From: Octopus bimaculoides
Taxonomy: Eukaryota
NCBI RefSeq assembly: GCF_001194135.2
Contig: NC_068990.1
Span: 7,955,997-8,019,996, forward strand
DNA: 64,000 bases
Direction of reading: 5' to 3'
Shown here: piece after piece, positions 8,692-61,790 of the stretch
Layout of the letters: every line of letters starts with the position of its first letter
Position numbering within the stretch: position 1 is the stretch's first letter
Position numbers and translations under genes: made by a program
Notes under the pieces: model-generated
What the model was told of the DNA's origin: nothing
Database searches by the model: none
What the model saw: the letters and a program-made list of their open reading frames with translations, nothing else

Positions 8692-8845
8692 ATACGACGG
8701 GCTTCTTTTAGTTTCCGTCTACCAAATCCACTCACAAGGCTTTGGTCGGCCCGAGGCAATAGTAGAAGACACTTGCCCTGTGGGACTGAACCCGAAACCA
8801 TGTAGTTCGCAAGCAAGCTACTTAACACACAACCACAGCTGCGCC
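8692..8845 (-). mobile_element. tRNA-head SINE, family B (head plus ...gggcaagtgtcttctactat...ggaaactgaaagaagcccgtcg core)
   Basis: Homologous to 50922-51078, 58432-58600 and 59533-59700. Its 3' side runs into an (AT)n tract and a gap. Confidence 0.8.
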
Positions 8846-8895
<50 letters not shown>

Positions 8896-14689: not shown

Positions 14690-14887
14690 ACAGAAACAGG
14701 AAGCAAGAGTGAGAGAAAGTTGTGGTAGAAGAGTACAGCAGGGTTCGCCACCATCCCCTGCCGGAGCCTCGTGGAGCTTTAGGTGTTTTCGCCCAATAAA
14801 CACTCACAACGCCCGGTCTGGGAATCGAAACCTCGATCCTATGACCGCGAGTCCGCTGCCCTAACTACTGGGCCGTTGCGCCTCCAC
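14690..14887 (-). mobile_element. tRNA-head SINE, family C (5' part)
   Basis: Reverse complement of the 5' part of the SINE at 34145-34465. Confidence 0.8.
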
Positions 14888-30640: not shown

Positions 30641-33600
30641 AATTAATCAGTTCTCACACACTTCTGAAACATTTTATTGTTTATATATATATATATNNNN
30701 NNNNNNNNNNNNNNNNNNNNNNNNNNNNNNNNNNNNNNNNNNNNACAAAGAGATGCATTAGTATAACGCTCGGGAATTGAAAAAGTTTTTAACGTGTCGA
30801 GCTTACGCTCTCCCACAGAAACGAACACAGTAAGAAACAAGGAGAGAAAAAAAAAGGAGAGAAAAAATGTGTGTAGTGGTCAGCGATCTATCATGGCGAA
30901 TATATATATATGACTCTCTTATTCTTTCATTCTTTCTTTCTTTCTATCAGCCTCTTCACACTTACTTCGTTCTTTCCACTCTTCTTTCGTTCCCCTCTCT
31001 CACATTTCCTGGTTTTCTCTTCATTATCACCTTCTCTCCTCTTTCACTTCACTCTGTCCCTTTTCATTTTCTCTCGTCCCTCCTTAATTCTTCTATACCT
31101 CTGCCTCTACCACTCTCCTCTCTCTCCGCGTTTCCGGTGTTCGGCCAAGTCTAACCTTTGTTTCTTGGTTCGACTACCATGCGTGCAACATCTATATTCC
31201 TCCGCATGCCTGTCATTTCTTATGTCTCAGCCGTAAGGCGTCACTTCCATACGCACCAGCTTAATTTAATTCGTCCTTAGTCGAATGGCACCTGTTATTA
31301 ATGTTCTATTATATGCATTTGTATTTGTGTGCCATTTCTCCCCTTTTTCCGTCCATGTTTTCGTATACATTCGCTGCTTTCTTCCGAGGAATCAAGTGCT
31401 CTTAGTTTAGTTCTTCCTTGCGGCTGGCCAGATTGGAGCAATCTCAAGTATAACCAGCCGAAATTGCAAAGATAATCTGGAACTCGACAGAGGAAAGAAA
31501 ACTCCGAATGACCCGTTCTTGTTTTTTCTTGTCCCTTTTTTGTATCATCTGTCTGGATGGCTTGCGTTCTTGTCCCATTTTTTTTATTCCTTTATATATT
31601 TAAAGCAGTTGTATACTGCCAACTTAATGTGACAGTCCCGGTAAAGGAATCATACTGCTGCTAATTAGCCTTAGGAAGCTGGACCGCTTCCTGTCGGCCT
31701 TGACACATTTCCTGTGTCCCTATGTTTGTGAGGGGGAGACAAGCAAGCACCTCCACCTAGCCAAGCCTGCATTCAGGGACATGTTTCTGAGGACAGGCAT
31801 CTTTTCGGAGAAAGTACTAGGTCCCTATTTTTTCGGGTTTTACGTTATGAGTTCAAATTCCACCAAGGCCATGTTTATTATTCATTCCTTCAGGGTCAAT
31901 AAAATGGAAACCAATTGAAAAATAGGGTCTATGTAAGCCCCTACTCCCGCCCAAATTGCAGGCCTTGCGCCAGTAGTGGAAAGGTGATTTTTACATTAAT
32001 TATCGGTAGCTAAAAGGGAAAACTTTTGAGATTTTTACCAAGAACGCAAAACTAGAAAGAAATACATGGCATTCTCTTTTTTACTTCAACATAATCGCAC
32101 AGACAAAAATCGCACAGACAAAAATCGCACTACACTATGTGAATACATACATTAGTGCTTTTGATCTTGTAAGTAAATGCCTAACTCTCAGTCTCGATAA
32201 GCTTGGCTTTTTAGAAAAAGAAATTAGCCGACTTACATTTACAAATACAGTCTTTAAGCAGAAAAGTAAAACTATGCAAGATGTTTCTCACGTTTAAAAT
32301 GTCAAATTGTTTTCGTTATCTACTTTCCAGCGACGGAGGTTTGTATCTTCAAAGGAAGAATTTAAAGACTTGAAAACAGAAAAAGATCATACATACATAA
32401 CATGTAAATACATATATGTAAGTATACACGTATGCACATATATATCCGTACATGTATATATATGTGTGTGTGCGCGCGTGGACATGTTTCTGTTTGTGTA
32501 TACACATGTATGTATATATATGTACATGTGTGTGGATATGTATATGTGTATACTCACAAACACATATCCACATAAATATATGCTTACATATGCGCGTGTG
32601 ACATTCGTCTTTAAATTGTAGCCCGTTATATCCTAATTTAATAGTGCTCTATTTTGGCTGTATAACCGCAAGAAATTTTTCCTCACTTGTATTGTTGCAG
32701 TATTAAAATATATCACGTTGATATTTATTGCTGCGTTTTAGGGAAGGGTATAAAGGATAAAACTGGTTAATGCTTCTACACTGTCAATGCTATATTTTGT
32801 ATCTTCGATATAAATCATCATTGAAGAGTATCAACCCTTTTAGAAAATAAAAGCCACCCAGGAAGTAAAATATTTCATCGGAATTCCTTTCTTCTTAGTA
32901 AAGTATTTTACTCTATTTACGACGCACATGTGCCAGGTAAAGTTATTGAAGACATAAAATTTCCTCATCCTTGTGTATAGATTATAGCATGTGACGCTAT
33001 ATAAGTTAGCAGGAATTTTTGAAGTTAACAGAGGTACAGAGACAGACAGCATGCACCTATTTCAAACAACACCACCTGCAGTTCACCGCAGTGTTCTTTC
33101 TGTTCATCATTCATGTATACACATCTCAACCAAGTTCTGCTAAAGTTCTGTCCGATAGATTAGATTTGTGCACCAAAACAAAGGCGAAGTTTGAAGTAAA
33201 AGAAAATGCCATACAGGTATTTAAACCAAAACGAACTGTACCTTTTGTTGTAGCGTTATAAAAGATAAATTTAGAGTTAGAGAGACGAGAAAAAAACTGG
33301 AGTTATTCCAAAAGTCAAATATAGTCAATGGGCATCACCAACTGTGTACGTAAAAAAAAAAAAAAAAGAATAATAAAATCAGAGTGTGTGCTGATTTTTT
33401 GACTGGCTGAAACGAATGTCTTCAAGTGTTCAACTATCTGCTTCTGCGGAGGACATATTTGAGAAATTCAACGGAGGCAAGGTATTTTCTAAATTGGATC
33501 TCTCTGACGCGTACCTACAGATTAGTGTAGACGATGCACGTTCTAAATACCTAACAATTGACACATATAAGTTATCATTTGGCTTAAAAGTCGCCTGGCG

Positions 33601-34144
33601 ATTTTTCAACAGATTATCGCTGCAATTTTAGCGGACTGTGAATTCGCAATTCCATATCTGGATGATTTACTCATAAACAGTGAATCCCGAGACCAACAGG
33701 TAGATAACGTAAAATATGTGTTCAAAAAAATTAGGGACTATGAGTGAAGGAAAGTGTGATTTTTTCTTATTGAAAATAAAATATGTAGGAAAAATCATTG
33801 GCAGAAATGAACGTTGACAAGAGCCATCGAAGACAGATGCAATTAAAAATATGCTAAAGGCCGAAAAATATAACGACCTTACAAGCATTTTTGAGACGAA
33901 AATTATATTCCAAATATGCACACCGTATGAGCTCTATTGAATAATCTGCTAAGACAAGATATAAGGTGGACCAGGTCTGAAAATTATCAGGTGTTCAAGG
34001 AAATTAAAAAAAAAAGATTAACATCTGATTTGGTTTCAGCACACTTCGTTTCTGCAGTGGAGATTATTGTAACTTTAGATGCCTCTGAGTATGGGATGGG
34101 AGCAGTAATGCTATATGAATATAAAGATGGTAAAATGAAGGCGG

Positions 34145-34465
34145 GGTGGAGGCGCAATGGTCTAATGGTTAGGGCAGCGGACTCGCGGGCGGAGATTCGC
34201 AGTTTCGATTCCCAGACCGAGCATTGTGTGTGTTTATTGAGCGAAGACACCTAAAGCTCCACGAGGTTCCGGCAGTGGGTGGCGGCGACCCCTGTTGTAC
34301 TCTTTCGCCCCAACTTTCTCTCCACTCTTTCTTCTTGTTTCTTGAGTAACGCTGCGGTGGACTGGCGTCCCGTCAAGCTAGAGGAAAATATTCACCATAG
34401 AAACCGGGAAACCGGGCCCATGAGCCTGGCTAGGCTTGAAAAGGGCGCATAAAAAAAGATAAATA
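34145..34465 (+). mobile_element. tRNA-head SINE family C inserted in Gypsy RNaseH, with 13-bp TSD
   Basis: A-box-like ggcgcaatggtctaatgg, B-box-like gtttcgattcc, A-rich tail. TSD aaaatgaaggcgg (34132-34144) / aaaatgagggcgg (34466-34478). The Gypsy coding sequence resumes after it. Confidence 0.85.
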
Positions 34466-35965
34466 AAAATGAGGGCGGTAGTTCATGCCTCACTTACACT
34501 GATATCAGCAGAAAAAAAAAAACTTACTGCTAAATCGTAAAAGAGGGTTTAGCGATTATTTTTGCCGCAAAAAAGTTTCATAGATTTTTACACGGTAGGA
34601 ATTTTCGACTACAGACTCATCATTGTTCGTTATTATTTATATATGGGTCGAAGAAAGGAATCCCTACCCATACTGCTAATAGGCTGCCACTCTGGTGTAC
34701 TATATTATGGAACTATGATTTTAAGATTGAGTATATACAATCTAAGAAATTAAGTCATGCTGATTGTTTATCAAGACTGATTTCAAAAAGTGCTGAAGCA
34801 TTTGAAGATGACGTGATTGCTGCGTTGCGAACGGAAAATGAAATTAATGATGTTTTGTGTAACATCATACGTGAACTGCCAGTTACGTTACAAGATATAA
34901 AATTAAAATCGGAAAACGATAAATTCATTAAAAAATAAAAGAGCTGCTGCGGACTAAAAGAGATAAAAATATGAGCAACACCAATGCGAACCCATTCTTA
35001 ATGTGTGACAATGTGTTGATGTAAGCACAAAGTGTCGTAGTACCAGCTACACTACAGAAGCGATTGTTATAAGAATTTCACATTGGTTACCCAGGGATTT
35101 CGAGAATGAAATCGTTTAATTGAAAGTTATGTATATTGGCCAACATTGGACCGTGACATTGAAGAACTAGTGAAAGCATGCAGAAGGTGTGCCCAAGCTG
35201 CAAAAGTACCTCCCACTAAATGGCAACCGCTGCCAAAAACAAATATTCCATGGTCCAGACTGCATGTTGATTACGCAGGTCCACTTAAGGGTTTATATTA
35301 ACTTTTTATGGTGGACAGTTTTTCAAAGTGGCCTGAAGTGCATAAGTATAAAATGCCAACATCTGCGGTTACAGTACGTATTTTACACGAATTGTTCGCC
35401 AGATATGGTGTTCCTGATAACATTGTGTCTGATAATGGAACCTAATTTACCTTAGACAAGTTCAGAAAATTTACCGTTACATATACATACCAGGGCCTTG
35501 TAAATGATGGTGAGCAAGATTTTTCAAATATTGGAGAACATAACAAGGTCATTGCTGGGATTTATCCAATGGCTTAAAATTTTTAAAAGTTTTTTCATAA
35601 AATCCTTCCTTCCATCATTTCCAATAAACGAAAAAGCAGGAAAAAAAAACAAAAAAAAACAAGAGAAAAGATTTGTCATAGTTTAAAAGTTCTGAATTAT
35701 CTCCCTTGAAGACTGCCATATACAGGCAGAGAATGAGTTTCTAAAGAGATTAGAATAATTAAATTTCTAAAATCTAGGTAAATAAAGTAAATTAAGTAAG
35801 TAGTATGTAACGAAAATGTTTTAATTAATTATATAAGTAAAATAAAATGAGAGTTATTTTGTTTTTGAGATGTATAAATAAATTAATTGTAAATGTTGTT
35901 GCTATAAGATCATCGAATGTATTGAATAGTAAAGGGATATATAGAAATTGTCCACGAGGAAAAGC

Positions 35966-36128
35966 ATACTTACCTGGCACAGGGGTAAACCGTGATCAGC
36001 AAGGTGGTTCTTCCAGAGTGAGGCCCTTCCATTGCACTCCGGTTGGGTTGACCTTTGCGATCGTCCCTAATGTGGGCGATTCGGGTGCGCTATTTCTAAG
36101 TGTGGGGTCTGCGTTCGCGCTCACCCCG
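35966..36128 (+). ncRNA. U1: U1 spliceosomal snRNA, copy 1 (163 nt)
   Basis: ATACTTACCTGG 5' end; SL2 loop ATTGCACTCC; SL3 with taatgt loop; SL4 ggggtctgcgttcgcgctcacccc. Helix H shows covariation (gcac/gtgc versus vertebrate gcag/ctgc). Confidence 0.93.
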
Positions 36129-36150
36129 TAAATCAAACAAAGAATAGACT
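36129..36150 (+). terminator. Possible snRNA 3' box downstream of U1 (aatcaaacaaagaatagact); repeated at ~37497-37518
   Basis: Position right after U1 and resemblance to the AAA..AGA 3'-box consensus; same in both copies. Inference only. Confidence 0.35.
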
Positions 36151-37333
36151 ATCGCTAATGAATTTTTATGGTAGATAGTTTTTCAAAGTGGCCTGAAGTG
36201 CGTAAGTATAAAAAGCCAACATCTGCGGTTACAGTTCGTATTTTACACGAATTGTTAGCCAGATATGGTGTTCCTGATACCATTGTGTCTGATAATGGAA
36301 CCTAATTTACCTTAGACAAGTTCAGAAAATTTTGTAAAAGTTCGTTGTCGAACACGTGACCACTCCACCGTATCATCCTTGGTCAAATGGACAAGCGGTT
36401 CGCTTTGTTGACAATTCTAAGAGGGCGTTGAAAAAGGCGAACAATGAAGTAATGGACAACCGTGCGTTCAACAATTTCTATGAGTGTACCGAGTAGCACC
36501 TAATACGAATACCCCACCTGGAATGTCCGCCGCAGAAGCATCAGATCCGTTTTAGATAAGATGATACCGAGTGAAAATAGAAAACAGGAGAATAGCAAAA
36601 ACATTCTATCACATCTTTCTTTCGCATGCTCTCGGATGTTATAACCTGCCCGTCGAGGTATGGTATTTTTCAACATAACGGTATATAAATACTTTCTTAA
36701 AACTTTATGCATTGTTCATCTTTCGCATCTTACAACATGCAATTATAACAACAAATTTTTATCGTTACAACTGCTGTCTCGCATATTACATATTATTGTG
36801 TACCTAATCAATCTTACCATTACAATTGGTAACTACACTAATTAAAACCCGACCGTTACATATACATACCAGGGCCTTGTAAATGATGGCGAGCAAGCTT
36901 TTTAAAATATTGGAGAACATGACAAGGTCCTTGCTGGGATTTATCCAGTGGCTGAAAATTTTCAAAAGTTTTTTCTTAAAAACCTTCCTTCCATCATTTC
37001 CAATAAACGAATAAGCAGAAAAAAAAAAACAAGAGAAAAGATTTGTCGTAATTTAAGTTATGAATTATCTCCCTTGAAGACTGCCATATACAAGCAGAGA
37101 ATGAGTTTTTAAAGAGATTAGAATAATTAAATTTCTAAAATCTAGGTAAATAAAGTAAATTAAGTAAGTAGTATGTAACGAAAATGTTATAATTAATTGT
37201 ATAAGTAAAATAAAATGAGAGTTATTTTGTTTTTGAGATGTATAAATAAATTAATTGTAAATGTTGTTGCTATAAGATCATCGAATGTATTGAATAGTAA
37301 AGGGATATATAGAAATTGTCCATGAGAAAAAGC

Positions 37334-37495
37334 ATACTTACCTGGCACAGGGGTAAACCGTGATCAGCAAGGTGGTTCTCCCAGAGTGAGGCCCTTCCAT
37401 TGCACTCGGTTGGGTTGACCTTTGCGATCGCCTCAAATGTGGGCGATTCGGGTGCGCTATTTCTAAGTGTGGGGTCTGCGTTCGCGCTTACCCCG
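37334..37495 (+). ncRNA. U1: U1 spliceosomal snRNA, copy 2 (162 nt)
   Basis: Same as copy 1 apart from a few substitutions and a 1-nt deletion after ATTGCACTC. SL3 still pairs (atcgcct/gggcgat). Confidence 0.92.
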
Positions 37496-38088
37496 AAAAT
37501 CAAACAAAGAATAGACTATCGCTAATGAATTCTCCAATGGTCATACATTGGAGAAGCATTGTATTGTACATGCATAGTTATTTTTCGCTGCTATTTCAAG
37601 CAAGTCATTATCTACGGAATACTATTACGGACATTTTTTCTTGCGGACGAATGTGTATTTCGTATCCTATGTACATGTGCAGATTTTAGGCTGCTGTTTC
37701 TAGCAAGTCGATCCTTTATCTAATGGATTTAAATAAATTATCATATTCATATTTGATATATTTAGGTTCATATTTGATGATACCGAGTGAAAATAGAAAA
37801 CAGGCGAATAGCAAAAATGTTTCAAAATTCTTCAAGTTAGGTGAAGTTAAAAATATGGTAAAGAAAGCTGTGAGGACGGTGTAATTGTTAAACAAAATGG
37901 AAGAATGTTATTCCTGTAAAAAGAGGAACTGTCGAACATAAAAGATAAATTAACCAACTTAAAAACGATTCACAGAAAGAAAAAAAAAAAAAACAATCAC
38001 AAGAAAACAAACCTCCATGGAAGTTTTTGCAAGACACGTTTGAGATACCAACACCCAAACAATGGAGAAGTTAGGGGAGACTAATTCT

Positions 38089-38100
38089 AAAAAGAAGAGA
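38089..38100 (+). other. Polypurine tract of the Gypsy element
   Basis: aaaaagaagaga lies immediately before TGTTG. Confidence 0.6.
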
Positions 38101-38250
38101 TGTTGTGGAAGAATTCCGACTACGCCACAAGTGACTAAAAGTGGATTGGAATATTGCTATAAAATAAAGAACTATCAGCACATCAGAGTAAGCAGTTCAC
38201 AGTAATGAATACGTTCTTTGCCCCTGCTTCGTTAAATTATTTATCCAACA
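38101..38250 (+). repeat. Gypsy 3' LTR (~150 bp)
   Basis: TGTTG...CAACA termini directly after the PPT and downstream of the integrase C-terminus. No second copy seen in the window. Confidence 0.6.
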
Positions 38251-38255
38251 CCATG

Positions 38256-38290
<35 letters not shown>

Positions 38291-38410
38291 TGAATCCAAA
38301 CATGAACGAGCAAGAAAAGACACGGAAAAGCAACAACGCGAGGACGTAGAATAAGTACAGTGTTATTGGACGCTCGTGCAGTTACTGTTTATACCTCGTT
38401 CAGAGATTTA

Positions 38411-38442
<32 letters not shown>

Positions 38443-38509
38443 GTATATGTATATATATAATTTAAGAGATGAGGAATTATGTACATTATTTACATTATTC
38501 ACATTTGAC

Positions 38510-38767
38510 GGCGTAGTGGTTAAGAGCGCGGGCTATTAACTCCAAGATTCCGAGTTCGATTCCAGGCAGTGACCTCAATAGTAGTAGTAATAATAATAAT
38601 TATTATTATTATAATAAGAGCAACATGGAAAAATACATTTGGGATGAGAACCCAGGTTAGAAATTTCCCCAAGACACCTGATGAAGGCTGGAGGGTATTT
38701 CAGCCGAAACGTTGTTCACAACAAACAAGATGAGGACAAATATCCGTCAAATGTAAATATGTAAATA

Positions 38768-38772
<5 letters not shown>
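38510..38772 (+). mobile_element. tRNA-head SINE with internal (AAT)n and a hammerhead-ribozyme-like 3' region
   Basis: A box gcgtagtggtta and B box gagttcgattcc; CTGATGA (38678) - stem ggctg...cagcc - GAAAC (38706). Confidence 0.7.
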
Positions 38773-38821
<49 letters not shown>

Positions 38822-40844
38822 ACATATTGTCCTTTTTGCTATGTATTTCATACTATGTTTTCTACTGATTCTCTTCCTAATTTATGATGACAATGCGGCT
38901 GTTATATCTATCATGGTTAATACCTATGCAATTGTCTTGCCTTATTGATTCTCAGCAAACTATCTGTGTTGTGTATTCACAGATAAGTTGTAGTCGAAAA
39001 AAAAAAACTATGAGTTTCATTTGTGATAATTCCATCATTTGCATATAAGAAATTAAATGTTTCGATATAGAGTTATTATAAATGGTCTGGCGTAATTTTT
39101 AGAGATTTAGCTGCTACGTTTTGCAGGTTAAACGACCTTGTGTCAGCTTCCTATCAAACCATATTGGCTGGTTCTTCCCAGCTCCTTATATCTGAATCTT
39201 TCTATTTCGTATTTTCAGATATGATGAGTGTTTGCCTCTAGACATAATGTTTTGATGTGACATCATTATAGTTAAATTTCACTTGTCTTTTGGCTTACAA
39301 TGCACAAATCTAGTTTCCAATTCAATGTTAAGGCTTCAAAGATAAGATTAAATCAGAAATCCATATTAGTTTTCTTACTTCAATAGGATAAATCAATGAG
39401 ATGTCAAGATCTTTTGACAAAAATTTAGCTTACAATATTGTGTGATCTCCTTATCGATTACGTATAGATTACTATCTTGCCGAACGTCTTAGTTTGATAA
39501 ACTAAGTTCAAGCAGAACAAACCACACTGAAGCTACGTATTTTTCAACACCCCCGATACCTATGTAAAATATTAATACTAGCATTTACAAGTATTTAACT
39601 AACGCTATAATAAAAAAAAAATTCAGACACACAAGTATCTGGAGATTTATCCAGCATAAATTCATGGCAGCATTTCTCGGTTTCTGTAAAGAAAAACAGT
39701 CTCTGTTTCATTGATATATAAATGAGATGTATTTAGAAAAGGCAAGGTATAAACAAGTTTTAGATGTTTGAAGATACAGCATGTATTGACGTCATATAAT
39801 TTAAACTAATAAGATTTTTGTATTCGTCAAGTTGTCGTATTTTTTTTTTATAAAGTAATGCTCCAAGCACTAGATATTTAACTTCCCTGCTATGCCCTTC
39901 ATTAATTTCATTTCTGTTCCAGAAACAGCATGCAAATTCTAATATAGAGGTATGTGGCATAAAAATATCCTTCTTCGTATCCAATAAGAAAGCTAAATAT
40001 CTTCAGTTTACTAATAGCAGTAGGTTATCTGTAAATATCTCTGGAGATGAACTGCCAATTAGCATCGTAAATGACCTACAGCAGATTTACTTGCAGTCAT
40101 GCACGTTAAGCTAAGAGAAAACTGATAACAGAAAAAAAAATTACAATAAAACTGACCCCTACTTACGAGGCGATATGGATTAAAATGAATTCTCCCTCAC
40201 CGTCATTATAATAAAATGAAAAATACTGCACATTCCCTATATTTGTGCCCTTTGTGCAGTGGAAATATGTTGTTTCTTTAGGTTCTAGAAACTATTCAGG
40301 TAACAGTCTACCAGGCGTTAGTTCGTGTCCGACTTAAATGGTAATTTTTTTTCTCTAAAATGAGTTGAGATGGAATATTGAACTATAAGTCTTTTAAATG
40401 ATTACAAGCAGAAGTAAAACGACTTGGCAAGAAGCAATATAGATATAGCTACAGGGGTTAAGCAATTTAGTAGAGTGTTCATCAGAAAGTGTTGCTGCAG
40501 CAGCGAATTTTCCCAAAATACACTTCTATTTATAGTTAAAACGCTACATGACCTATTTTACTTTACTATTAATTTTATAGTGATCAGAATTCCGTTATGA
40601 CGATTTACTTACAGATTCAATGTATATGTTCAATACCAAGCCAAAAGTTAAATCTCGAGTTCAGATTTTATCTGTTCAACATTTATGTAATATATTCTAC
40701 ACCACTACTTTATTTCCACAACGACGCTGTTGATTCAGACTGGTTTCTCATTCGGAGCTGCCTAATCTAGCGCGCATTTTCACCTCTATTTTTCCCTATC
40801 CGACACTCAGTCTATATAGCTGATTAATATTTTATTCATCCTAA

Positions 40845-41277
40845 GGCGGCGAGCTAGCAGAAACGTTAGCACGCCGGGCGAAATGCTTAGCGGCATTTCG
40901 TCTGCCGTTACGTTCTGACTTCAATTTCTACCGCGGTCGACTTTGCCTTTCATCTTTCGGGGTCGATAAACCAAGAACCAGTTACGCACTGGGGTCGATG
41001 TAATCGACTTAATCCCTTTGTCTGTTCTTCTTTGTTCCTTCTGTTTTTAGCCTCTGGTGGGCAATAACGAAATATGAAACGTAAGCACGCCGAGCGAAAT
41101 ACTTAGCTGCATTTCGTCTCTCTTTACGTTCTGAGTTCAAATTCCGCCATGGTAGACTTAGCCTTTCATCCTTTCGAGGTCGATAAATTAAGTACCAGTT
41201 GCGTACTGGGGTCGATCTAATCGACTGGCTCCCCTCTCCCCAAATTTCGATCTTTGTGCCTAGAGTAGAAAAGAATA
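40845..41277 (+). mobile_element. Two tandem SINE family A copies (40845-41072 full length; 41085-41277 5'-truncated)
   Basis: Both align to the 2786 unit. Confidence 0.85.
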
Positions 41278-42039
41278 TTTTATTCATCTTTTTAATCACT
41301 GAAATATAGATCAGACACTCCTATTGCACAGTACTCTGTGATTATATTAAAGTAAACGATTGTATCTTTAATACAAATATTCATGCTAGCGAACTTACAA
41401 TATTTCTAAGCCTCGAAACAGCAAACAACAGAATTGAAATAGTGTCAGGTGTAGTAATTTATACTCTAATAGCAGGCAAAACATACTTCCATTAGCTAGG
41501 TGAACTTAAGGATTGCGTATTAGGAGAATATCTTGCTCGAGGACATCTAAAATACTTTTGGAATGTTTCAAATCAATAACCGTGACCTGGTAATATAATA
41601 TTTTCCATAATAATATTATCTGAGGTGTGTCATAGTTGTAAGTCAATATTTTCGTTCTATTTTATTCAGTTAATCATATTTGAATATTGCGAATATAATT
41701 ACACGTTAACACGCTGAAATGCTGATACGATATTGATAAATTATAGTATGGATAACAATGATAATAATTAACACTCGTACAGCTATTACTGATGATGACG
41801 ACGGTGATGATGATGATGATGATAATGTAAACGTTAGACTATTAATTTTGAGGGGAGTAGTGATGTCGAATACGTTGGCATCATTTCTAGATTGGTACTT
41901 TATTTTATCGACCTCAAAAAGTTAAAAGAGAATGTTGACCTATGTGAGATTTGATTTTAAAATGAAAAGAAAGTGGAGAAATACGGCATTTTGTCCGATA
42001 TTCTACTAGTTCTGTCAAAATACACTAAAATTCAAACAT

Positions 42040-42230
42040 CAGTAATGTAAAATTGTACTCATCCCAATAATAATTGGGACAGAAGAAACAGCTGTAAGAA
42101 TTTCAAAACGAACGGTTGAAAACATAGGATCGAAATGAATTATTGAACTCTACAGGATACTTGTTTGTTTGGAACAGCAGGAACTATAAGAAAAGTGTTA
42201 GAAAGCTAAGTTTGTAAGACGAAAATCAGT
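42040..42230 (+). mobile_element. R4/Dong-like LINE 3' fragment
   Basis: ...PIIIGTEETAVR...TLQDTCLFGTAGTIRKVLES*. Confidence 0.6.
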
Positions 42231-42287
42231 ATGTAACAAACCAAAACCAACAGAACAATAACTAAATACTGAATGAAAGAAAGATAA

Positions 42288-43348
42288 AAACTAGTAAAGA
42301 GCTCGTAGAGCGCAGACCTCCGCCAAGCAGCTCATTGCCACCCATATCCACGCATGCTAAAAATCGCCCACCATTACCCCCATCTCCTCAGCATCACACA
42401 TTCACACAGCTCATGTCACCATTATAACCACCGAAACTATTTTATCCTCCTCCCATACTTATCTCGACCATCGTCATCATAAACACTGTCTCTGCTTTCA
42501 CCACAATCACCGTCAAAACTACAATCACCACAATCAGTTTCTTTACATAATTGAAAATCCATTATCCGATATTCATGGGATCGAGATTGTTGCAGATGTT
42601 TGATTTTTCTCATTTCGGAGTGCTTTATAACAAAAAAAAAAAAAAAATTGCATCTACAAAGCGGAACAGCTTGAGGATAGAAACCAGGTCTAAACACAAT
42701 ACTCTGAATGTAGTTCTATATAAATCTTTAATGATTTTTTATACTTAAGACCATCAGAAATGTTAAGATATCAGCCTCTACCCACGTTGTTATGGTTTGA
42801 TTAGAAGGTTACAGCATAGATTAGATTACTTAAATAAGTTTCGGCCAAAGTTGACTCAGGCCATGTCTAATTTAATAGCACCACCTGGAAGAGATACACA
42901 GTCAGCTCTGGGGAACCATAACCCATTCAAGGAAAGGGTTATTGTTTTCAGAGACATATCTGAGTGTGGGTGGTTATCTAGGGATCGTTTGAATGCCGTG
43001 AAGTCACGCGAGTAAAATTACTAATAGAAAAACGAAAATAAACTTTGGAAATAGCAACGCCACCATAGGTTACGTAGGGACGATGAACACGTTTTCAAGG
43101 GAGATAATCAAAGAATGTAACATTTAATACTTCATGTAAAGTAAATATAACAAATGAAAAATCTTTCAAGAATCCATAATTATTTCCGGATCACTACCGA
43201 AATTTCATCATCTGGTCCTTGCGTTATTAACAACTTTTTCTGCAAATTTCATCAAATACCGTTCACAACGTTTTGAGTTATTTTGCACAGAGACAGACAA
43301 ACCAACGCCGATGAAAACATAACCTCCTTCCTTGGCGGGGGTAATAAT
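42288..43348 (+). mobile_element. Non-autonomous Helentron-like (HINE/DINE-type) element
   Basis: Sub-terminal inverted repeats acctccgccaag (42316-42327) and cttggcgggggt (43331-43342), a 3' stem-loop acctcc...gggggt, and internal microsatellite-like tracts. Confidence 0.45.
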
Positions 43349-43475
43349 ATTACTGATAAAAACAAACAGCAGCAACGATGATTAAAACAACGCTATCATA
43401 AAAATAACCATGATAAAATAACACAACTACTACTAATACTACTACTACTACTGCTGCTACTGCTGCTGCTGCTGC

Positions 43476-43506
<31 letters not shown>

Positions 43507-43985
43507 GATGAGGATATCTTAAACAATAATATTAACAATAAAAAAGTTCCGGCCGGTGCTTAATAGCATCATGGAGAGTTGTAAAGGTGACCTTCTTCAT
43601 GTCTGAAATAAATTATTTAGACTCTGTAAAAACTATATCAATTTTAATACAATGTTATATAGAGACTATTGGCTAAGTCTTTTATGCATTTAATTGCAAT
43701 TATCATGTTAAATATATTTTTGGAGTAAAATACGTGTGAGTTTGATCTGCATGATGAAGAAAGAAACAGATCGTAATAAACTAAAACAACATAAAATAGA
43801 ACGAATCTAGTAAACACAGCTAAGGCCTACATACTGCACGTATGATTCACGCACACAGAAAATTTACTGTTTAAATTGCATGCACACCCAGTATCTCTCA
43901 AACACATGCAGGAAAAGAGAATTCGTAAAAACACCTAACAGAAATGATAGAGAATGGAATGAATTTTTAAACGAAACAATATTGC

Positions 43986-44185
43986 TTTCAAGCTTTGGAA
44001 TAAGGCCAGAAATTTCGTGGGAGGGACAGGTGAACCTCAGTACTCAACTGGGTGGTACTTACTTTATTGACCCTGAAGGATGAAAGGTAAAGTTGACCTC
44101 GGAGGAATTTGAACTCAAGAACTGAAGACGAACTAAATGCCGCTAAGCATTTTACCCGGCGTGCTAAAGATTCTGCTAGCTCACC
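43986..44185 (-). mobile_element. SINE family A (diverged)
   Basis: Reverse-complement similarity to the 2786 unit. Confidence 0.75.
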
Positions 44186-44479
44186 GATTTTAAACGAAGC
44201 AATATTAAAATAACATATTCTGCTTAAAAATAAAATAAAACAGCAAACAAGAAATTTAAAGGTTGAGAGGTTTGCGATCGGTATAGAAAAAGACTGCCAT
44301 TCATCAACTATGCTGTCATTTAATATCCACCCTTAGTACAGAAATAACATTATAAGAAACGCGAATATAATAAAAATTATATAGAAGACTACTTTCTTTT
44401 CTTCTAGGTGGAAACTTAGATTCGGCTTCTCCAGACCTGCAATCTCTCCAACATGCATTAACCGTCTTTTTTCTTCTGC

Positions 44480-44790
44480 TCTTTTCTAGAATAACCGGCC
44501 CAGATCTGAAGAACTAAAACGGAAAGTAAAGCCAAAATCTGCCAAAATAAAGAAATACAAAGAACGGAAGACAAAACGGTATAATTAAAATCCACTTTTT
44601 CAATCAAACTGGAAACATGTATTGGATATTCTAGAAGAAAATGAAAGAAAGAATAACATAAAACCGAATGCAAAAGTGAGAAAGCTATTTGGGGGAGAAT
44701 TTCGTAAGAATATCCAAATAGAGTACCAAATACAAGCCCAATGAATAAAGCAAGTGGAGAATTAAAGTGAAAATGTTGAGACACGCAAAA
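44480..44790 (+). mobile_element. R4/Dong-like LINE fragment, upstream of RT
   Basis: NWKHVLDILEENERKNNIKPNAKVRKLFGGEF..QAQ*IKQVE resembles the pre-RT region of this LINE type. Confidence 0.5.
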
Positions 44791-44843
44791 ATGTCCACCT
44801 CCTTCTCCTTCTATTCCTCCTTCTTATCACTACCACCACCACC

Positions 44844-44877
<34 letters not shown>

Positions 44878-44884
44878 TCCTCAG

Positions 44885-44916
<32 letters not shown>

Positions 44917-45348
44917 CTATTATGGCTATTATATCAAGAAAAATGTCAGCTTTACTTTGTAACGGAAAGTGCCAGCTGCCTCCAGCCAGCAGAAAAATGT
45001 GCCACATGTTTACTGATTATGCTTCAAAAACCCGAAGAGGGCTCTTCTAATTCCAAGCAAAGATGATGTTTGCAGGTGTTCGAATCTATCTGAGCACTCG
45101 TTCCCATCCAGTCGAGCACTGGTACGCCATTTGCATCTACAGAAATACTTCTGTATTAAAACTCCATAACCATCATGTTTACTTGTTTCACCTTTATCTT
45201 GCAGTATGGCTAGTAGTTGCTGGACCACGACCTGACCCACCCTGCTGCAAAATGGGACACTTACCGAGGGCGTCACATTAGAATTAGCTGTTTTATGTGA
45301 AATTTTCATTCATGAGGTCACCACCAATCGATTGGTGTTGTTCTTGTT

Positions 45349-45404
<56 letters not shown>

Positions 45405-46660
45405 TTTCTCTTTATTTGTTGGAACTCCTGGAGTCTTGCATGCATAGGGGCTTATTATCTACAACCTTACGGTACCATGCTATTCGTTCTTTTCAGCTAT
45501 CTAATAGATTCCTGATCATTCTGTTCGTGCCAAGACGGCAAACCTTTTGTAACAGTTCTACTGGGCACTCTATTCCAATTTCCTTCATATTCTTTTTGAT
45601 GCATTCTGAGACTGTCCCCAGGGATCCAACAATAATTGGCATTATCTTCACCATAGCCGAGTTATTTTGTACTTAAGGGGGTTGTATCTCTCTATCCATC
45701 TTTTCGCCTTCCTACTTGACTATTCGTTGACCAAAGGGGCATGCAACTTCAACTATGTAGCATATGTGGCATTCCTTGTCCACCACCACTAGGTTCGTCC
45801 TGTTATACTCTAACACCTGATCTGTTTGGATTGGGAAATCCCAGAGGATTTTTCTAGTCTCCGACTCCGTCACTCTCTGCGGTGTGTACTCATATCACGT
45901 CTTGCCTCTCTCGAGCCCCCACTTTACGCAGTTTCCGAGTTAGCACTTTCACTAACTGGTCCTGTCGTCACAACTTGTAGTAGTTTGGGACAAATCTTGG
46001 GCATTCGTTCGTGATATGAGAAATGGTTTCATCCACTCTGTTGCAGACGCGTCACAGTGGAGACACTTGTTCATTCCTAAGGTTGACCCTCCAGTTCATG
46101 GCGAAAGATTAGTCCTGCGCAGCCAGTATAGTGATCTCGATCTCTTTTATTAGTTTTCTTTTCATTAGCTAATGTCATCTATTTTTTTCAGCAACTTCTG
46201 TTATGGCTGCATGGAATTAATTGTGTAGTACTTTCTTGCATAATTCTTCTTGTCCTTTTTGTACTTTTTCCTTTGTTTCCTTTTATCCTCTGCTCTCAAT
46301 ACTCCCGCATTCCTAATTGTCATTTGCAAGATTTGCTTACTTTGGTTTAGGTATCTTATTAATCTCTTGAGATACGCACGCAGTCTTGTGGATTTATCAG
46401 TCCCATTCCTCCATTTTTCTCTTCATGTGTAGACGATTAGTGGATGATGGGCTCCATGAATCGTTAGGAGATTTCTTGACTTCCTGTCCATCCCCTTTAA
46501 TTCCTCCTCTGTCCACTTCAGCATTCTAACGCCATACCCAACTACTGCGACTGCGCGCGAATTTATTGCCAAAATTATGTTTCTGGCATTTAGCTTTGAA
46601 GTCAATATTTTTCTCACTCACCACAGGCGCTCTCTTTTAATCTTTCCTTTCTCTTTTATG
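45405..46660 (-). mobile_element. R4/Dong-like LINE 3' portion (RT end, zinc finger, RLE), bounded by (AAT)n and (GAT)n
   Basis: ILTSKLNARNIILAINSRAVAVVGYGVRMLKWTEEELKGMDRKSRNLLTIHGAHHP, an RLE region, and terminal PIIVGSLGTV..KVCRLGTNRMIR. Confidence 0.8.
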
Positions 46661-46681
46661 CTTTCCGTCGTGTAGAAAGAA

Positions 46682-46682
46682 A

Positions 46683-46767
<85 letters not shown>

Positions 46768-46768
46768 T
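46682..46768. repeat. (ATT)n array; another at 47110-47165
   Basis: Directly visible. Confidence 0.95.
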
Positions 46769-46789
46769 TGTCAGCAGTGTAATTGGAAA

Positions 46790-47095
46790 ATGCAGGGGAG
46801 TATTTAGTTATCTATCAAGTCTCAACAAAGATCTCAGACAAATGATACATTCCTTAAAACTAGCAAAAGATAATTTTTGCATGACAGCATTCTTGCATGA
46901 TATTCGCAACCGCTTTAAGAAGGCTTAAAGTTTCAATAGAAGTGATCCTAATGCCCCCATCATAAGCTGATAGCACTTTTACATTAACCTCTGTCATTCT
47001 AAACAGTCTTGCCATTTCCAGTTTCAGTTCAAAGTACTTGGTGATCTTTTCGACCCCTTTACTCGCAATATTCATGTAATTTAGTGTGGCTACGT
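46790..47095 (-). mobile_element. R4/Dong-like LINE 3' fragment between two (AAT)n arrays
   Basis: ORF 46860-47075, NIASKGVEKITKYFELKLEMARLFRMTEVNVKV..., matches the EK..KY..L..E..RLW....VKV RLE-terminal motif. Confidence 0.6.
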
Positions 47096-47109
47096 GAATG
47101 ATATACGTC

Positions 47110-47163
<54 letters not shown>

Positions 47164-48199
47164 CGTTGTTGTTATTCTTGTTGTCTTATCAAAGCGTGGT
47201 GTTGGCAGAAACTTTAGATCACGTTTCAATAAAATAAGATTTCAATCTTATTCATTAAACTTTGAAACATTTTCAACAATAGGGTACGAATGCTTACACA
47301 GAAGTTGAAAACTATTGGTTTCAGTTCATTAAAACTAATCAGGATCTGATTCGCGCTGGATTATACAGTGGGTTGGTTGATTACTTGTATAAAAGTCGGA
47401 AAGTTATCTACGTTGTGTTTCAATACCGAGACAGCACTAGAGATACAGTACTAAATTATTAAACCACTGTGTTAGTTGTTTCCATATTTCCCAATATGAA
47501 TCACTGTCCAGAAATTGTCTATAATTTAAGTGCTATTAAACGAACTGAGCATAAAGCTGATCTAGTTATCCGTGTATATCGTTGTATTAAAATTAGTTGT
47601 TTACCGGCATGAAAGCGTGCTATACATTTTAGAACCAACTGCTTCTTATTGAAATTTAAAACCAGGAAATCCATTTGAGCACAAGCTTATTTTTTGGTGG
47701 TGTTGGAGTGAAACAGTAAATGTTTCAACAGTAAATGTTTAAAAGAATACCCTTTCAGCATAAACCTCTGGCTAAATATCATTATCATTTGAAGATTCAA
47801 AACATCGCCTGTGGAAAGTACTAAATATATTATTAAAATATTTGTACGTCAGCAAAATGTAGGATTACGCAAATGCGGTGCGAAAAAATGAGGCACTAGA
47901 AACCATGATAGCAAGCAGGTGGAAGTGCTAACTAGAAATCTGTTTGGTTATTGTTTTACGTTCTGATACCTGGTTAGGGAGTGCATTTACAATCTCGAAG
48001 CGGATGTAGGTATTCTGTATATTTATCACAAGAATAAAGTGCGTATATTCAAGCACGTTCGGCTGAAAAGGCATTCCAGAGAACTTGGGGATTTGATACA
48101 CAATTAGCTTATTCAAATTTCACCTTAGAGGCCTCCAGTATTCGCCAATAACTCTATCCTGAATTTTTTTGTCATAACGATTTCCGTTCAGGAAAGTAG

Positions 48200-49680
48200 A
48201 GAGCATACAATGATCTCATAGCGCCATCAGTAAAATATAGAAATTATTTTTAAAGTCTCAGGCAAATTATATTTGAGTTTTCCCATCCTTTTACGTTCCA
48301 GGTGTTAGAAATTTTCAATATTTTATAGAAATGGAATTTTTACGAAACCATTCAAAAATTGATTGCCTGATGTGTTTCTCTTAGGCAATAATGCGAACGT
48401 ATTGAGTAAAGAATCTGTGTTTCAGTTTCAAATACCTCGAGACTTGTTTACAATATTTACCAGCATATGCACTTAATTTCAACAAATCAATGTATATCAA
48501 CTCCCCTTGAATTATAAATATGCAAAGAAAGAAATTACTCGAAGAAGATGAAGAAAGATTGGAAATGGAGGATGTATAGCTAATTAATAATTTTCTTGTT
48601 TGAAAATGGAAACAGATTTTCATAACGTGGCTTATAATTCAACAATTTGGAGATATAAATGAGATGAACATTTTCTTCAGGTAACCAAGACTTAGAAAGA
48701 AGAAGTGATTGCAATTATAAACTTTATCTGTAACTCGCAACTAAATTGTATTTATGTTGATGCCTCCTGGTGGATTCTGGGCAGTGTCGACTGGAATTTC
48801 TGCCACTCTGTTCTCAAGGATATAGACATCAAATATTTATTTGGACAACTAGTCGTTATAATTGATGCAAGTGTTTGCTACTTGGTCTCTACCTCCAATT
48901 ACGCATTCTCTATGAGAAATCATAATCTTTTCATTATTAACGAAGCTTACATATTTTCAATTCACGTTCGCAGTGGTATGGATACAACAGGTTTTGGAAC
49001 TGCATTTGGAGATATTTACATCATGTTTTATAAGGTCTACCAAAACATACTGCACTACTTGAAATTTATATGAGAAAAACTCTGTCGACTTCTCTAAATA
49101 CATGCGTAAATGCAAGTTAAATCAATGGTAATTATAGTACGTTTGCTTTATTTTGAAGAAGAGATGCTAATGATAAAAGCTACGCTTCTGAATTTGTCGT
49201 CATCAATGCTCCAAATCGGATTGTAATTCAAAAATACTCTTTGCTATAGAACACTGGATAGGTAACAGTGCACTGCGCAATAATACAAGTTTCAAAATTA
49301 TTCTTTCCCACGAGTATACCTCAAATACTGCTTATATGAGATCTTCACATTATCTCAAGGGCCAACACTTCAGAAAAATACAATTTCAAATGAAATTATA
49401 TACTTTAGGATTCTCTTTAAAATTGATTTTTTCCTGTTTAAGGAGTTAAATATTTTGTTGGATTGTGGCTATAAAGAACTGAATTGAAGTCATTATATTG
49501 TCTGTAGCATTGGTGAATTACTTGTGCTTAATTCACCAATACTACATTATTGCCGTCCATATGAGGCAATGCTGAACATTAAAGAAAATAGCTATTTGCT
49601 GTTTCATTTGATGGGCCATATTTCACCCCTGGGATATACAGCAAAAGTATAAATTTTACCGGTTGTCGAAGTACAATCAT
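48200..49680 (+). mobile_element. Highly decayed Helitron (PIF1-like helicase remnant)
   Basis: CIYVDA-PGG via a 1-nt frameshift (48745-48773), AVSTGISATL, LFIINEA, AFGDIYIMF..YQNIL, AMLNIK and DGPYFTPGIY fall in PIF1 motif order. Confidence 0.45.
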
Positions 49681-50887
49681 AAAAATCATTTTAACAAATT
49701 CTATGAGACCGAAATATCTGAGATACATACTAATAATTACTAATATTTCAGTCGATTCAGTTTAGCCGTTCGAAGAAGATATTGGCCATATTGAAAACGG
49801 GGAAAAAAAGTCCAATAAATTGTAACTGATCAGTTTTATATGGACTTCCAATGTGTGTTAAGCCGCAAAAGTCTGTTTGCTGAATAACAAAATAAACAAT
49901 TAAATAAATGAAAAATTGAAAAAGAGACTAAACAAAGCAAGTGACAGTAGATTATTTCAAGTAACTGACGTCCCTTCTATAATTAAGCACGTCATTTTAG
50001 CAATGAAATGGAAATGATAATATTGTAACGAAGCGAGAAACCTTCTCATCACGAGCGCTGTCTGTGTTTTTCTATTTGATTATTGATCTGTTTCTTTTTC
50101 TAGTGTGTGTTGCTCTTTGCCTCTTGCACACAGTTCTTGATGACAGAAAAGAGATTCGCTTTCGAACATTCATAGCGTGCATTGTTAATTGTTGTGAACG
50201 TATTCTCTGAAAAGAGTTGTAACTCATCTTAGAGATTTAAAACCATCAGAAGACTGATATGTTTCATATGGAACAAAAAAGAGGCTCATATTCAAATAGT
50301 TTCTAATATATATATATGTGTANNNNNNNNNNNNNNNNNNNNNNNNNNNNNNNNNNNNNNNNNNNNNNNNNNNNNNNNNNNNNNNNNNNNNNNNNNNNNN
50401 NNNNNNNNNNNNNNNNNNNNNNNNNNNNNNNNNNNNNNNNNNNNNNNNNNNNNNNNNNNNNNNNNNNNNNNNNNNNNNNNNNNNNNNNNNNNNNNNNNNN
50501 NNNNNNNNNNNNNNNNNNNNNNNNNNNNNNNNNNNNNNNNNNNNNNNNNNNNNNNNNNNNNNNNNNNNNNNNNNNNNNNNNNNNNNNNNNNNNNNNNNNN
50601 NNNNNNNNNNNNNNNNNNNNNNNNNNNNNNNNNNNNNNNNNNNNNNNNNNNNNNNNNNNNNNNNNNNNNNNNNNNNNNNNNNNNNNNNNNNNNNNNNNNN
50701 NNNNNNNNNNNNNNNNNNNNNNNNNNNNNNNNNNNNNNNNNNNNNNNNNNNNNNNNNNNNNNNNNNNNNNNNNNNNNNNNNNNNNNNNNNNNNNNNNNNN
50801 NNNNNNNNNNNNNNNNNNNNNNNNNNNNNNNNNNNNNNNNNNNNNNNNNNNNNNNNNNNNNNNNNNNNNNNNNNNNNNNNNNNNNNN

Positions 50888-50919
<32 letters not shown>

Positions 50920-50921
50920 CA

Positions 50922-51078
50922 AGCAACGGGATTCTTTCAGTTTCCGTCTATCAAATCCACTCAAACTTTGGTCGGCCCGAGGCGATAGTAGACGTCACTT
51001 GCTCAAAGTGGAGCGCACTGGGACTGAATCTCTAACCATGTGGTTGTAAAGCAAACATCTTATCACACAAACACGCCC
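50922..51078 (-). mobile_element. SINE family B
   Basis: Homologous to 8692-8845. Confidence 0.8.
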
Positions 51079-53914: not shown

Positions 53915-54107
53915 AGCCGGGCGAAATGCTTAGCGGTATTTCATCTGTCTACGTTCTGAGTTCAAATTCCACCGCGGTCGACTTTGCCTTTCATCCTTCC
54001 GGGTTCGATAAATTAAGTACCAGTTGCGTACTGGAATCGATCTAATCGACTGCCGACTGCCCCACTTCCCTCAAAAATTCGGGGCCTTGCGCCTAGGGTA
54101 GAAAAGC
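53915..54107 (+). mobile_element. SINE family A (5'-truncated)
   Basis: Aligns to the 2786 and 41085 units. Confidence 0.85.
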
Positions 54108-58431: not shown

Positions 58432-58599
58432 CGTCGTGGTTGTGTGGTAAGAAGCTTCTTGCCCCACCTCATGGTTCCGGGTTCAGTCTCACTGCAGCGT
58501 GACATCTTGGGCATGTGTTCTCTACTATAGAGTCGGGGTGACCAAAGCCTTGTGCGTGGTTTTGGAAGACGGAAACTGAAACAAACCCGTCGCACACCC

Positions 58600-58657
<58 letters not shown>

Positions 58658-59532: not shown

Positions 59533-59945
59533 GGCGTGCCTGAGTGGTTAAGAAGCTTGCTTCCCAACCATGTGGTCTTTGGCTCAGCCATACTGTGTGG
59601 CTCCTTGAGCAAGTAAGCAAGTATCTTCTACTATGATCTCCGGGCAACCAAAACCTTGTGAAGTGATTTGGCAGACGGAAACTGAAAGGCCGTCATATAT
59701 ATATATTTGTGTGTGTGTGTGTGGGTGCGTGTCCATGCGCCTGCGAGTCTTTGCGTTTGTCCCTTATTACCGCTTGACAACCGGTGCTGGTTTTTTTAAG
59801 CCTCCGTAACTTAGTGGTTCAAGAAATGGGACCGAGAGATTCAGTACTAAGCAAAAGAAAAAAATAGTCTTTGGGGAGGTTTTCTTCCACTAAAGCTTCA
59901 AGGCGGTGCACCGGGATGGTTGCAGTCCAATGACTGACATTAAAA
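59533..59945 (+). mobile_element. SINE family B, full length with internal microsatellite
   Basis: Same layout as 58432-58862. Confidence 0.75.
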
Positions 59946-60658: not shown

Positions 60659-61790
60659 TGAATCTAACCTATATGAACTTTCGCTCCAAAATATTTGGAC
60701 CTCCATTCCACCAGTATAGAAGAGAAAACTGGAAAAGGTACCTAGAAGATTGTCTTATCATCTGGAATGAAACCTATGATAAACTAGATTTCAAATCCAC
60801 ACTGAACAATGTAAGCTCCAATATGCAATTTACAATAGAATATAGCAAGGGACAGCTCCCATTTCTGGACATTTTGATTATTAAAAAATCCAACAACCAA
60901 ATTACAACTGACATCTACTACAAACCAATAGACTCAAAACAGTATCTCCTTTTCAGTTCATGCCATCCTAAACACACCAAAATAAATATCACATTCTGGA
61001 TAAAAGGATCTGCACAATTGTATCTGACACAACCACTCGGAAACCTCGCCTACAAGACCTCAAAATAAGACTCATTGAACGTCAATATCCACCCGCACTT
61101 ATAGACCATGGAATTGAAAGTGCCAAGAAATTGGACACAAAACAATAAGGACAGCAAAACAAAACATCACACCTCACTTTAAATCACTCCCATACATATC
61201 AACCCAGAACCTCAGAAACAATGGAGCATAAAATTATACAAAATCTCCCTCTGCTCATTCAGGACCCGAAAATGAACAATATCCTAAAGACACATAAACT
61301 CCTCAAATGCAAAAGACAGCACAAATCACTCAAGTGACTCCTAACAAATGCAAAACTATACTCAATACATACGATACTAACAAAAATTCAGCCGACTTAA
61401 TTGTGGTACATGCCTATATCAGGCTGGGAATTCATAACCCAACAAGGAGAAACATTCTCAATTAAGACCAACTTCACATGTGCTTCCCAGAACCTTATCT
61501 ATGTCCTAAACTGCTCAGGTTGTGTCCACAATAATGTGGGCCAAACGACCCTTACTTTGAGTCACGCTGCATAAAGAACAGATTCATTTTCCTCAATACA
61601 AGCATATAGCCCTGAGCGAACATATCCACAGATGCGCAAGAAATAAAACACCGAATTTCCACATCTTTCCATTATACGAATGCAAAGATTCAATTCTCCT
61701 TACACGAACGCCTAAACAAGGAAAGCCTGTTCATACAAAAGTACAGACCATACCTTAATATACAAAACTTGAGTCCTTCAAAAATTGTGC
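60659..61790 (+). mobile_element. Penelope-like element fragment (RT C-terminus plus GIY-YIG endonuclease), decayed
   Basis: WKRYLEDCLIIW..QFTIE..LPFLDILI..TTDIYYKP..QYLLFSSCHPKHTK; then FTCASQNLIYVLNCSGC..VGQT..HIALSEHIHRC. Confidence 0.88.

Follow-up and report, generated by a model that had tools for sequence, protein, structure and literature searches.

In a stretch of Octopus bimaculoides DNA of 64 kb, which we call the window, two full-length U1 snRNA genes are found inside a retrotransposon to which they do not belong. Each gene is carried by a longer cassette of U1-locus DNA, both cassettes lie on the forward strand in the integrase region of a decayed Ty3/Gypsy-type element, and each is bracketed by a direct duplication of the host sequence, ~170 bp in the case of cassette 1 and 42 bp in the case of cassette 2 (Table 1). 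The initial annotation had singled out cassette 2 and its 42-bp repeats; its coordinates are real but cover half of a two-part structure, of which cassette 1 with its own duplication is the other half.

The host element and its two U1 genes

The host is identified by Pfam matches to RVT_1, RT_RNaseH_2, Integrase_H2C2 and rve, which follow the order RT, RNase H, integrase, and its nearest protein relatives are octopus integrases of the 'K02A2.6-like' type, the best of them, from O. bimaculoides, at 69% identity. Many stops and frameshifts interrupt its reading frame. No 5' LTR was detected for this copy, the only LTR-like homologue being the 3' one at 38064-38283, and the copy is accordingly degraded or truncated. 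As comparators we used two related Gypsy copies, L001 (O. bimaculoides CM046618.1, 31347049-31359537) and L002 (O. sinensis CM016866.1), whose DNA identity to the copy in the window is 74-86%. L001 itself contains a 212-bp direct repeat (3076-3287 and 7007-7218, 85% identical) that resembles a short LTR remnant.

Table 1. Features of the U1-bearing Gypsy copy, in window coordinates
Feature	Position	Strand	Remarks
Host decayed Ty3/Gypsy-type LTR retrotransposon, left part (RT, RNase H, integrase zinc finger and core)	33140-35302	+	76-86% DNA identity to L001/L002; Pfam
A, host integrase segment, first copy of the ~170-bp duplication	35303-35472	+	163/170 identical to 36163-36332
B, U1 cassette 1	35473-36164 (692 bp)	+	Internal subset of cassette 2; 96.0% identical to 36852-37531
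U1 snRNA gene copy 1	35966-36129	+	Rfam RF00003, 126.2 bits, full length 1-166
A', second copy of the ~170-bp host duplication	36163-36332	+	Carries the same TAA stop as A
C, host integrase segment between the cassettes	36333-36601 (last 42 bp = t)	+	36333-36559 collinear with L001 6328-6566
t, first copy of the 42-bp host (target) duplication	36560-36601	+	Encodes part of ...DKMIPSENRKQENSK, integrase C-terminal linker
U1 cassette 2	36602-37775 (1174 bp)	+	D + B' + E; absent from L001/L002; matched in the window only by B
D, found in cassette 2 only	36602-36851 (250 bp)	+	Without counterpart in cassette 1
B', cassette 2 equivalent of B	36852-37531	+	96.0% identical to cassette 1
U1 snRNA gene copy 2	37334-37496	+	Rfam RF00003, 121.4 bits, full length 1-166
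E, found in cassette 2 only	37532-37775 (244 bp)	+	Without counterpart in cassette 1
t', second copy of the 42-bp host duplication	37776-37817	+	41/42 identical to t
Host Gypsy right part, integrase C-terminus (NVSKFFKLGEV...) and 3' LTR-like remnant	37818-38283	+	L001 6609-7235; L001 repeat 3071-3280

Both U1 genes exceed the gathering score of the RF00003 covariance model (69.5 bits), both have an intact 5' end, ACUUACCUG, and the Sm-site region reads AUUUCUAAG. For copy 2, the sequence read directly gives a TATATAG motif ~28 to 22 nt upstream of the gene and, beyond its end, a 3'-box-like CAAACAAAGAATAGA at 37501-37515. Diagnostic for one copy or the other are U1 positions 46, 97-101 and 155 as numbered in cassette 2 (window 37380/36012, 37431-37435/36064-36068 and 37489/36122). 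The genes differ from each other at 6 of 163 positions, no fewer than the upstream flank (21/482; p = 0.82), and since the genes are as diverged as the DNA in front of them there is no sign of purifying selection. Both full-length copies retain, besides the proximal promoter, a 3'-box-like element. They are most likely pseudogenes, or else neutral variants of the gene. Literature searches returned no usable account of octopus U1 genes or of U1 pseudogene classes.

Several other repeats populate the window. A tRNA-derived SINE at ~34137-34455 interrupts this Gypsy copy in its RNase H region (head ...GGTCTAATGGTTAGGGC...GTTTCGATTCCC..., with A-box and B-box); it is absent from L001 and L002 and has a related copy on the minus strand at 14692-14887. 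A family of short interspersed repeats with a tRNA-like B-box (...GAGTTCAAATTCC...GGGGTCGAT...) occurs at 2783-2952, 31835-31949, 40842-41233 (two copies 216 bp apart) and 53944-54052, with 62-89% identity between copies. Another interspersed repeat, of ~180 bp, is found at 8688-8852, 50888-51069, 58438-58634 and 59540-59706 of the window, where it often adjoins N gaps and TA or CA microsatellites, and also at L001 986-1189 and L002 12007-12152. Finally, a 131-aa ORF on the forward strand beside an N gap (60673-61068; ...FLDILIIKKSNNQITTDIYYKPIDSKQYLLFSSCHPKH...) looks retroelement-like by eye and has no Pfam match.

Cassettes, junctions and empty sites

The 42-mer around cassette 2, GATGATACCGAGTGAAAATAGAAAACAGG(A/C)GAATAGCAAAAA, which begins with GATGAT, occurs exactly twice across the window; the one mismatch between the copies is A at 36589 and C at 37805, and 100 shuffles gave no match at all. 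Similarity breaks off abruptly at both edges, which puts the length of the duplication at 42 bp. Much of what the initial annotation said of this insert is borne out: two 42-mers with a single mismatch do bracket 1174 bp of non-Gypsy DNA, and the ~730 bp of upstream flank and ~280 bp of downstream flank that it assigned to U1 measure 732 bp and 279 bp. Its description of the 42-mers as a target duplication also holds, with L001 and L002 each having a single homologue that adjoins the right flank. The possibility it had raised against itself, that Gypsy family members already contain both 42-mers or the inserted flank, is not what we find; L001 and L002 have the one 42-mer and no similarity to the insert.

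Equally, the earlier remark that the insert lacks the hallmarks of a transposable element agrees with all three of our tests, for terminal inverted repeats, poly-A and Helitron ends. The termini of cassette 2 read CATTCT...CATATTT; direct reading of the sequence finds no poly-A at either end, the score for terminal inverted repeats is 12 as against a shuffle mean of 13.1, and the Helitron signature (5'-TC...CTRR-3' with a 3' hairpin) is not present at these termini. The ends thus do not match those of a DNA transposon or Helitron, the other outcome that had been named as fatal to an insertion of this kind. We rejected a DNA transposon or Helitron on the shuffle-level inverted repeats and on the duplications, which at 42 and ~170 bp are not of fixed length. 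We likewise rejected a LINE-mediated retrocopy, be it a class 1 TSIP or an snRNA retropseudogene: there is no A-tail, the insert starts 732 bp upstream of U1, and the duplication begins with GATGAT and not at a TTTT/A target.

What of a mobile unit of a kind not yet described, one with U1 as its cargo and with long target duplications that vary in size? Two related U1-bearing insertions, each with its target duplication, are what such a unit would leave, but the two inserts have different ends, cassette 1 being an internal subset of cassette 2, and terminal repeats are absent. The unit would also be without apparent coding capacity (no long ORF, no related protein), and no further copy occurs in the window or in the two loci retrieved for comparison. 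We know of no transposase or integrase that gives duplications like those of 42 and ~170 bp, and we find this explanation scarcely credible.

Two smaller features of the cassette 2 sequence may be mentioned here. The 12-mer TTCATATTTGAT is present twice, 21 bp apart, at 37746-37757 inside E and at 37767-37778 across the junction of E and t'. Its recurrence hints that the donor continued with GAT, equal to 3 bp of microhomology at the right junction; in that case the donor would run on with GAT after ...TTCATATTT. We also considered short stretches in which the 42-mer is complementary to U1 (ACCGAGTGAAA against TTGCACTCGGT) or the target to the region upstream of U1, and set them aside as being at chance level for a region of 1.3 kb.

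Cassette 1 runs from 493 bp upstream of U1 (482 nt on its equivalent in cassette 2) to 35 bp downstream, just past the 3'-box-like motif. Its junctions are readable, since we have the template (B') as well as the target: microhomology is 0 bp at the left junction and 2 bp (TT) at the right, and there is no filler DNA at either. B' remains in place, ~520 bp from the cassette 1 insertion point and at 96% identity, and it follows from this retention that the cassette 1 event was a copy-and-paste event, needing synthesis. Altogether, four novel junctions fall within 2.3 kb, and they share one template, one orientation and one age. The differences between B and B' are unevenly spread, with 14 mismatches in the 200 bp of 36852-37051 and 13 in the 480 bp of 37052-37531; a post-hoc split between the first 187 bp and the rest gives p ~0.05. 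Such unevenness could come from error-prone synthesis near the left junction of cassette 1, or from constraint on the proximal promoter and the gene.

The same junctions bear on the suspicion that the locus is an assembly artefact of a short-read draft, made from a chimeric contig or from haplotypes set one after the other. The window is indeed draft sequence, with 12 N gaps and abundant repeats. Nevertheless, we regard an artefact as most improbable: no N run falls within 30745-50322, junctions that share only 0-2 bp leave an assembler no repeat through which to join sequences wrongly, a divergence of 4% separates the duplicated parts, and a simple tandem duplication would have a different layout.

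The state of the site before insertion can be seen in the related copies, neither of which has a U1 gene or any similarity to the cassettes. The A/A' segment is present once in L001 and once in L002, and when 35472 of the window is joined to 36333, and 36601 to 37818, the result aligns contiguously with L001 6055-6850 over both joins. In the multiple alignment, L001 and L002 each contain one homologue of the 42-mer followed by ...TTCAAAATTCTTCAAGTTAGGT..., which corresponds to the right flank in the window. Additionally, the joined translation, ...IRSVLDKMIPSENRKQENSK|NVSKFFKLGEV..., is gap-free against intact integrases (...IRSVFDKLLPKQTKQ...KFNPGEKV...). L002 has an inverted segment at 6414-6714, in which 6472-6714 corresponds, in reverse complement, to window 36544-36601 plus 37818-37982; the inversion breakpoint lies ~20 bp upstream of the 42-mer homologue, and the insertion site itself is uninterrupted.

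Order of events and the insertion mechanism

Divergence between the duplicated parts provides a relative clock. The host duplication A/A' differs at 7 of 170 positions (4.1%), the cassettes B/B' at 27 of 680 (4.0%, plus three indels) and the 42-mers t/t' at 1 of 42 (2.4%), and these values do not differ significantly (Fisher p = 1.0). Because the host duplication and the cassettes are equally diverged, B and B' had not yet diverged from each other when the duplication of A took place. A single event would have produced both cassettes, or cassette 1 would have been copied from cassette 2, and between one complex event and two steps the data do not decide; it is unlikely that members of a diverged gene family were captured independently. 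The reverse order is excluded, since cassette 2 has 250 bp and 244 bp that cassette 1 lacks and therefore cannot derive from it. The initial annotation's term for cassette 2, the primary insertion, is compatible with this asymmetry, although 'primary' may equally mean 'simultaneous'.

The host was by then no longer a working element. A TAA nonsense codon stands at 35443-35445 in A and at 36303-36305 in A', where L001 and L002 both have CAA, and the A-rich target duplication of the RNase H-region SINE (~17-22 bp) is far more diverged than the U1 duplications, in a comparison that low complexity makes imprecise. From the nonsense codon common to A and A', together with the more diverged SINE duplication, it follows that the U1 events hit a long-resident, already defective Gypsy copy, and a DNA-level event is therefore favoured over one that took place during reverse transcription.

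Retroelements do recombine with cellular RNAs, LINE-1/snRNA chimeras being an example. A Gypsy reverse transcriptase could have jumped to a co-packaged read-through RNA spanning a U1 locus and then back by 42 nt (and by 170 nt), in which case the chimera was born at retrotransposition. Jump-back duplications would be expected from such copy choice, and both cassettes have the Gypsy sense orientation. Against it, the host segment that was duplicated already had its nonsense codon, and the SINE that this copy also contains seems to predate the U1 events, as befits a long-standing genomic resident. A cassette that starts 732 bp upstream of U1 was not copied from the snRNA and would call for a long sense read-through transcript; a second chimeric copy, moreover, is absent from the window, L001 and L002. 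We consider an origin during retrotransposition very unlikely.

How, then, did U1 DNA come to lie twice in the same dead element? The explanation that we favour, with a probability that we would put at about one half, is synthesis-dependent template switching of the FoSTeS/MMBIR type in a Gypsy copy that was already dead, which amounts to a 'cycle of templated insertion' in the germline. It is from the architecture of the locus, the empty sites, the cassette 1 junctions, the equal divergence and the lack of transposon hallmarks that we infer polymerase switching. A nascent strand copying the integrase region of the defective resident Gypsy would leave the host template after ...GAATAGCAAAAA (36601), would then copy 1174 bp from a locus with a U1 snRNA gene (732 bp upstream, the gene and 279 bp downstream), and would re-enter the host 42 bp behind its point of departure, such that these 42 bp would be copied again and come to bracket the insert. 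Cassette 1 would have arisen together with cassette 2 in one multi-switch event, or afterwards, through a pair of local switches with cassette 2, 0.5-1.4 kb away, as the template; its return point would lie ~170 bp back, and the jumps would measure ~520 bp forward and then ~1.37 kb back. A tandem duplication of A-C-D-B followed by deletion of C-D would give the layout of cassette 1 with the same two junctions, and we count that route as a variant of the local switching model and not as a separate rival.

Staggered double-strand breaks provide another way to obtain a direct host duplication with sharp edges. Nicks 42 bp apart on opposite strands would leave long 5' overhangs to be filled in, a free U1 fragment, linear or eccDNA, would be ligated by end joining, and a second break, ~170 bp wide, would have taken up a shorter fragment. 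Fill-in of long 5' overhangs could indeed yield the 42-bp and 170-bp duplications, the 0-2 bp of microhomology at cassette 1 would be equally compatible with end joining, transposon hallmarks would not be expected, and insertions that patch double-strand breaks are documented in the form of class 2 TSIPs (PMC5110952). Those documented cases, however, are without target duplications and show a microdeletion instead (PMC5110952). Two independent long-overhang breaks within 1.1 kb would also be required, with the same template, the same orientation and, given the equal divergence, the same time; the segment taken up, which kept its place 520 bp away, would in addition have to be available as a free copy.

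Taken together, we judge break repair with fragment capture to be rather unlikely. The staggered break or eccDNA integration that the initial annotation had proposed is not specifically supported; that proposal had not weighed the divergence of the cassette 1 duplication (4.1%) against that of the cassettes (4.0%). The same signature appears twice within 1.3 kb, with duplications of 42 and ~170 bp, one orientation and one template, and serial template switching therefore fits better than two independent staggered breaks. Additionally, since the related Gypsy copies are single for A and for the 42-mer and the joined flanks are gap-free, the host DNA appears to have been re-copied, not cut.

Known systems and what the locus means

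Tumours and human genomic disorders provide well-documented templated insertions in which host DNA was re-replicated; germline cases outside mammals, with junctions at base level and an empty site, are to our knowledge less commonly described. Cycles of templated insertions and local n-jumps have been set out for cancer genomes (Li et al. 2020, PMC7025897), and FoSTeS/MMBIR template switching has been offered as an explanation for rearrangements of this kind (Hastings et al. 2009, PMC2621351). The octopus locus resembles these cycles (PMC7025897, PMC2621351) in that a presumably distant template was copied, a host segment was re-replicated and flanks the insert, the switches are clustered, the junctions have little or no homology and, in the case of cassette 1, the template was retained. 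The described cycles are somatic, in cancer, or pathogenic in humans and usually involve kilobases to megabases, whereas here we have a fixed germline fossil in a cephalopod, with re-replicated segments of 42 and ~170 bp and an snRNA gene as the template.

U1 genes have their own history of dispersal. Denison and Weiner reportedly described, in the early 1980s, a class I of human U1 pseudogenes that is DNA-mediated. Like those pseudogenes, the octopus cassettes carry long 5' and 3' flanking DNA and so spread as DNA and not via the snRNA. Class I pseudogenes are generally seen as duplications of a locus or array, whereas the unit here, of 1.17 kb, lies in unrelated sequence with a defined target duplication and an empty site.

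TSIPs provide a further likeness, being short sequences with a distant template that are found at an unrelated site and transmitted in the germline (PMC5110952). Class 1 TSIPs, which are LINE-1 mediated, combine a target duplication with poly-A and a TTTT/A target, and class 2 TSIPs have end-joining scars and no target duplications (PMC5110952); cassette 2, with a long duplication and no poly-A, fits neither class. Retropseudogenes of snRNAs and LINE-snRNA chimeras are likewise dispersed snRNA-derived copies with flanking target duplications, but they are RNA-mediated and start at or within the transcribed snRNA, in contrast to cassette 2 with its 732 bp of untranscribed upstream flank, its 3' flank and its missing A-tail.

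The template was presumably a bona fide genomic U1 locus. Our searches for this donor covered several kinds of data. BLAST of the cassette against the whole window and the two retrieved octopus loci gave cassette 1 as the sole match; exact-product look-ups of spurious ORFs across the left junction and U1 found nothing on record; 11 ORF translations taken from the cassette and its two junctions, searched as one concatenated sequence, had no match among 5.8 billion proteins; and the first 39 nt of this U1 had 0 matches in metagenome contigs.

What the locus offers is an internally dated pair of events in which an snRNA gene and its promoter were dispersed as DNA, without reverse transcription and without a transposon. 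As a single locus it is an ordinary fossil with no evident function, and it becomes important only if the pattern recurs genome-wide for U1 or other snRNA loci. We can imagine, as something of a long shot, that U1 loci in octopus are recurrently dispersed by DNA-level copy-and-paste that leaves long target duplications of variable length; the route might lead through template switching at snRNA loci, which are highly transcribed and prone to breaks, or through extrachromosomal DNA that derives from U1 and reintegrates. Cytogenetic studies report that snRNA gene clusters move in many animals. If it proved true, recurrent copy-and-paste of U1 would be a sequence-level mechanism for that movement, and this locus would be its first resolved footprint.
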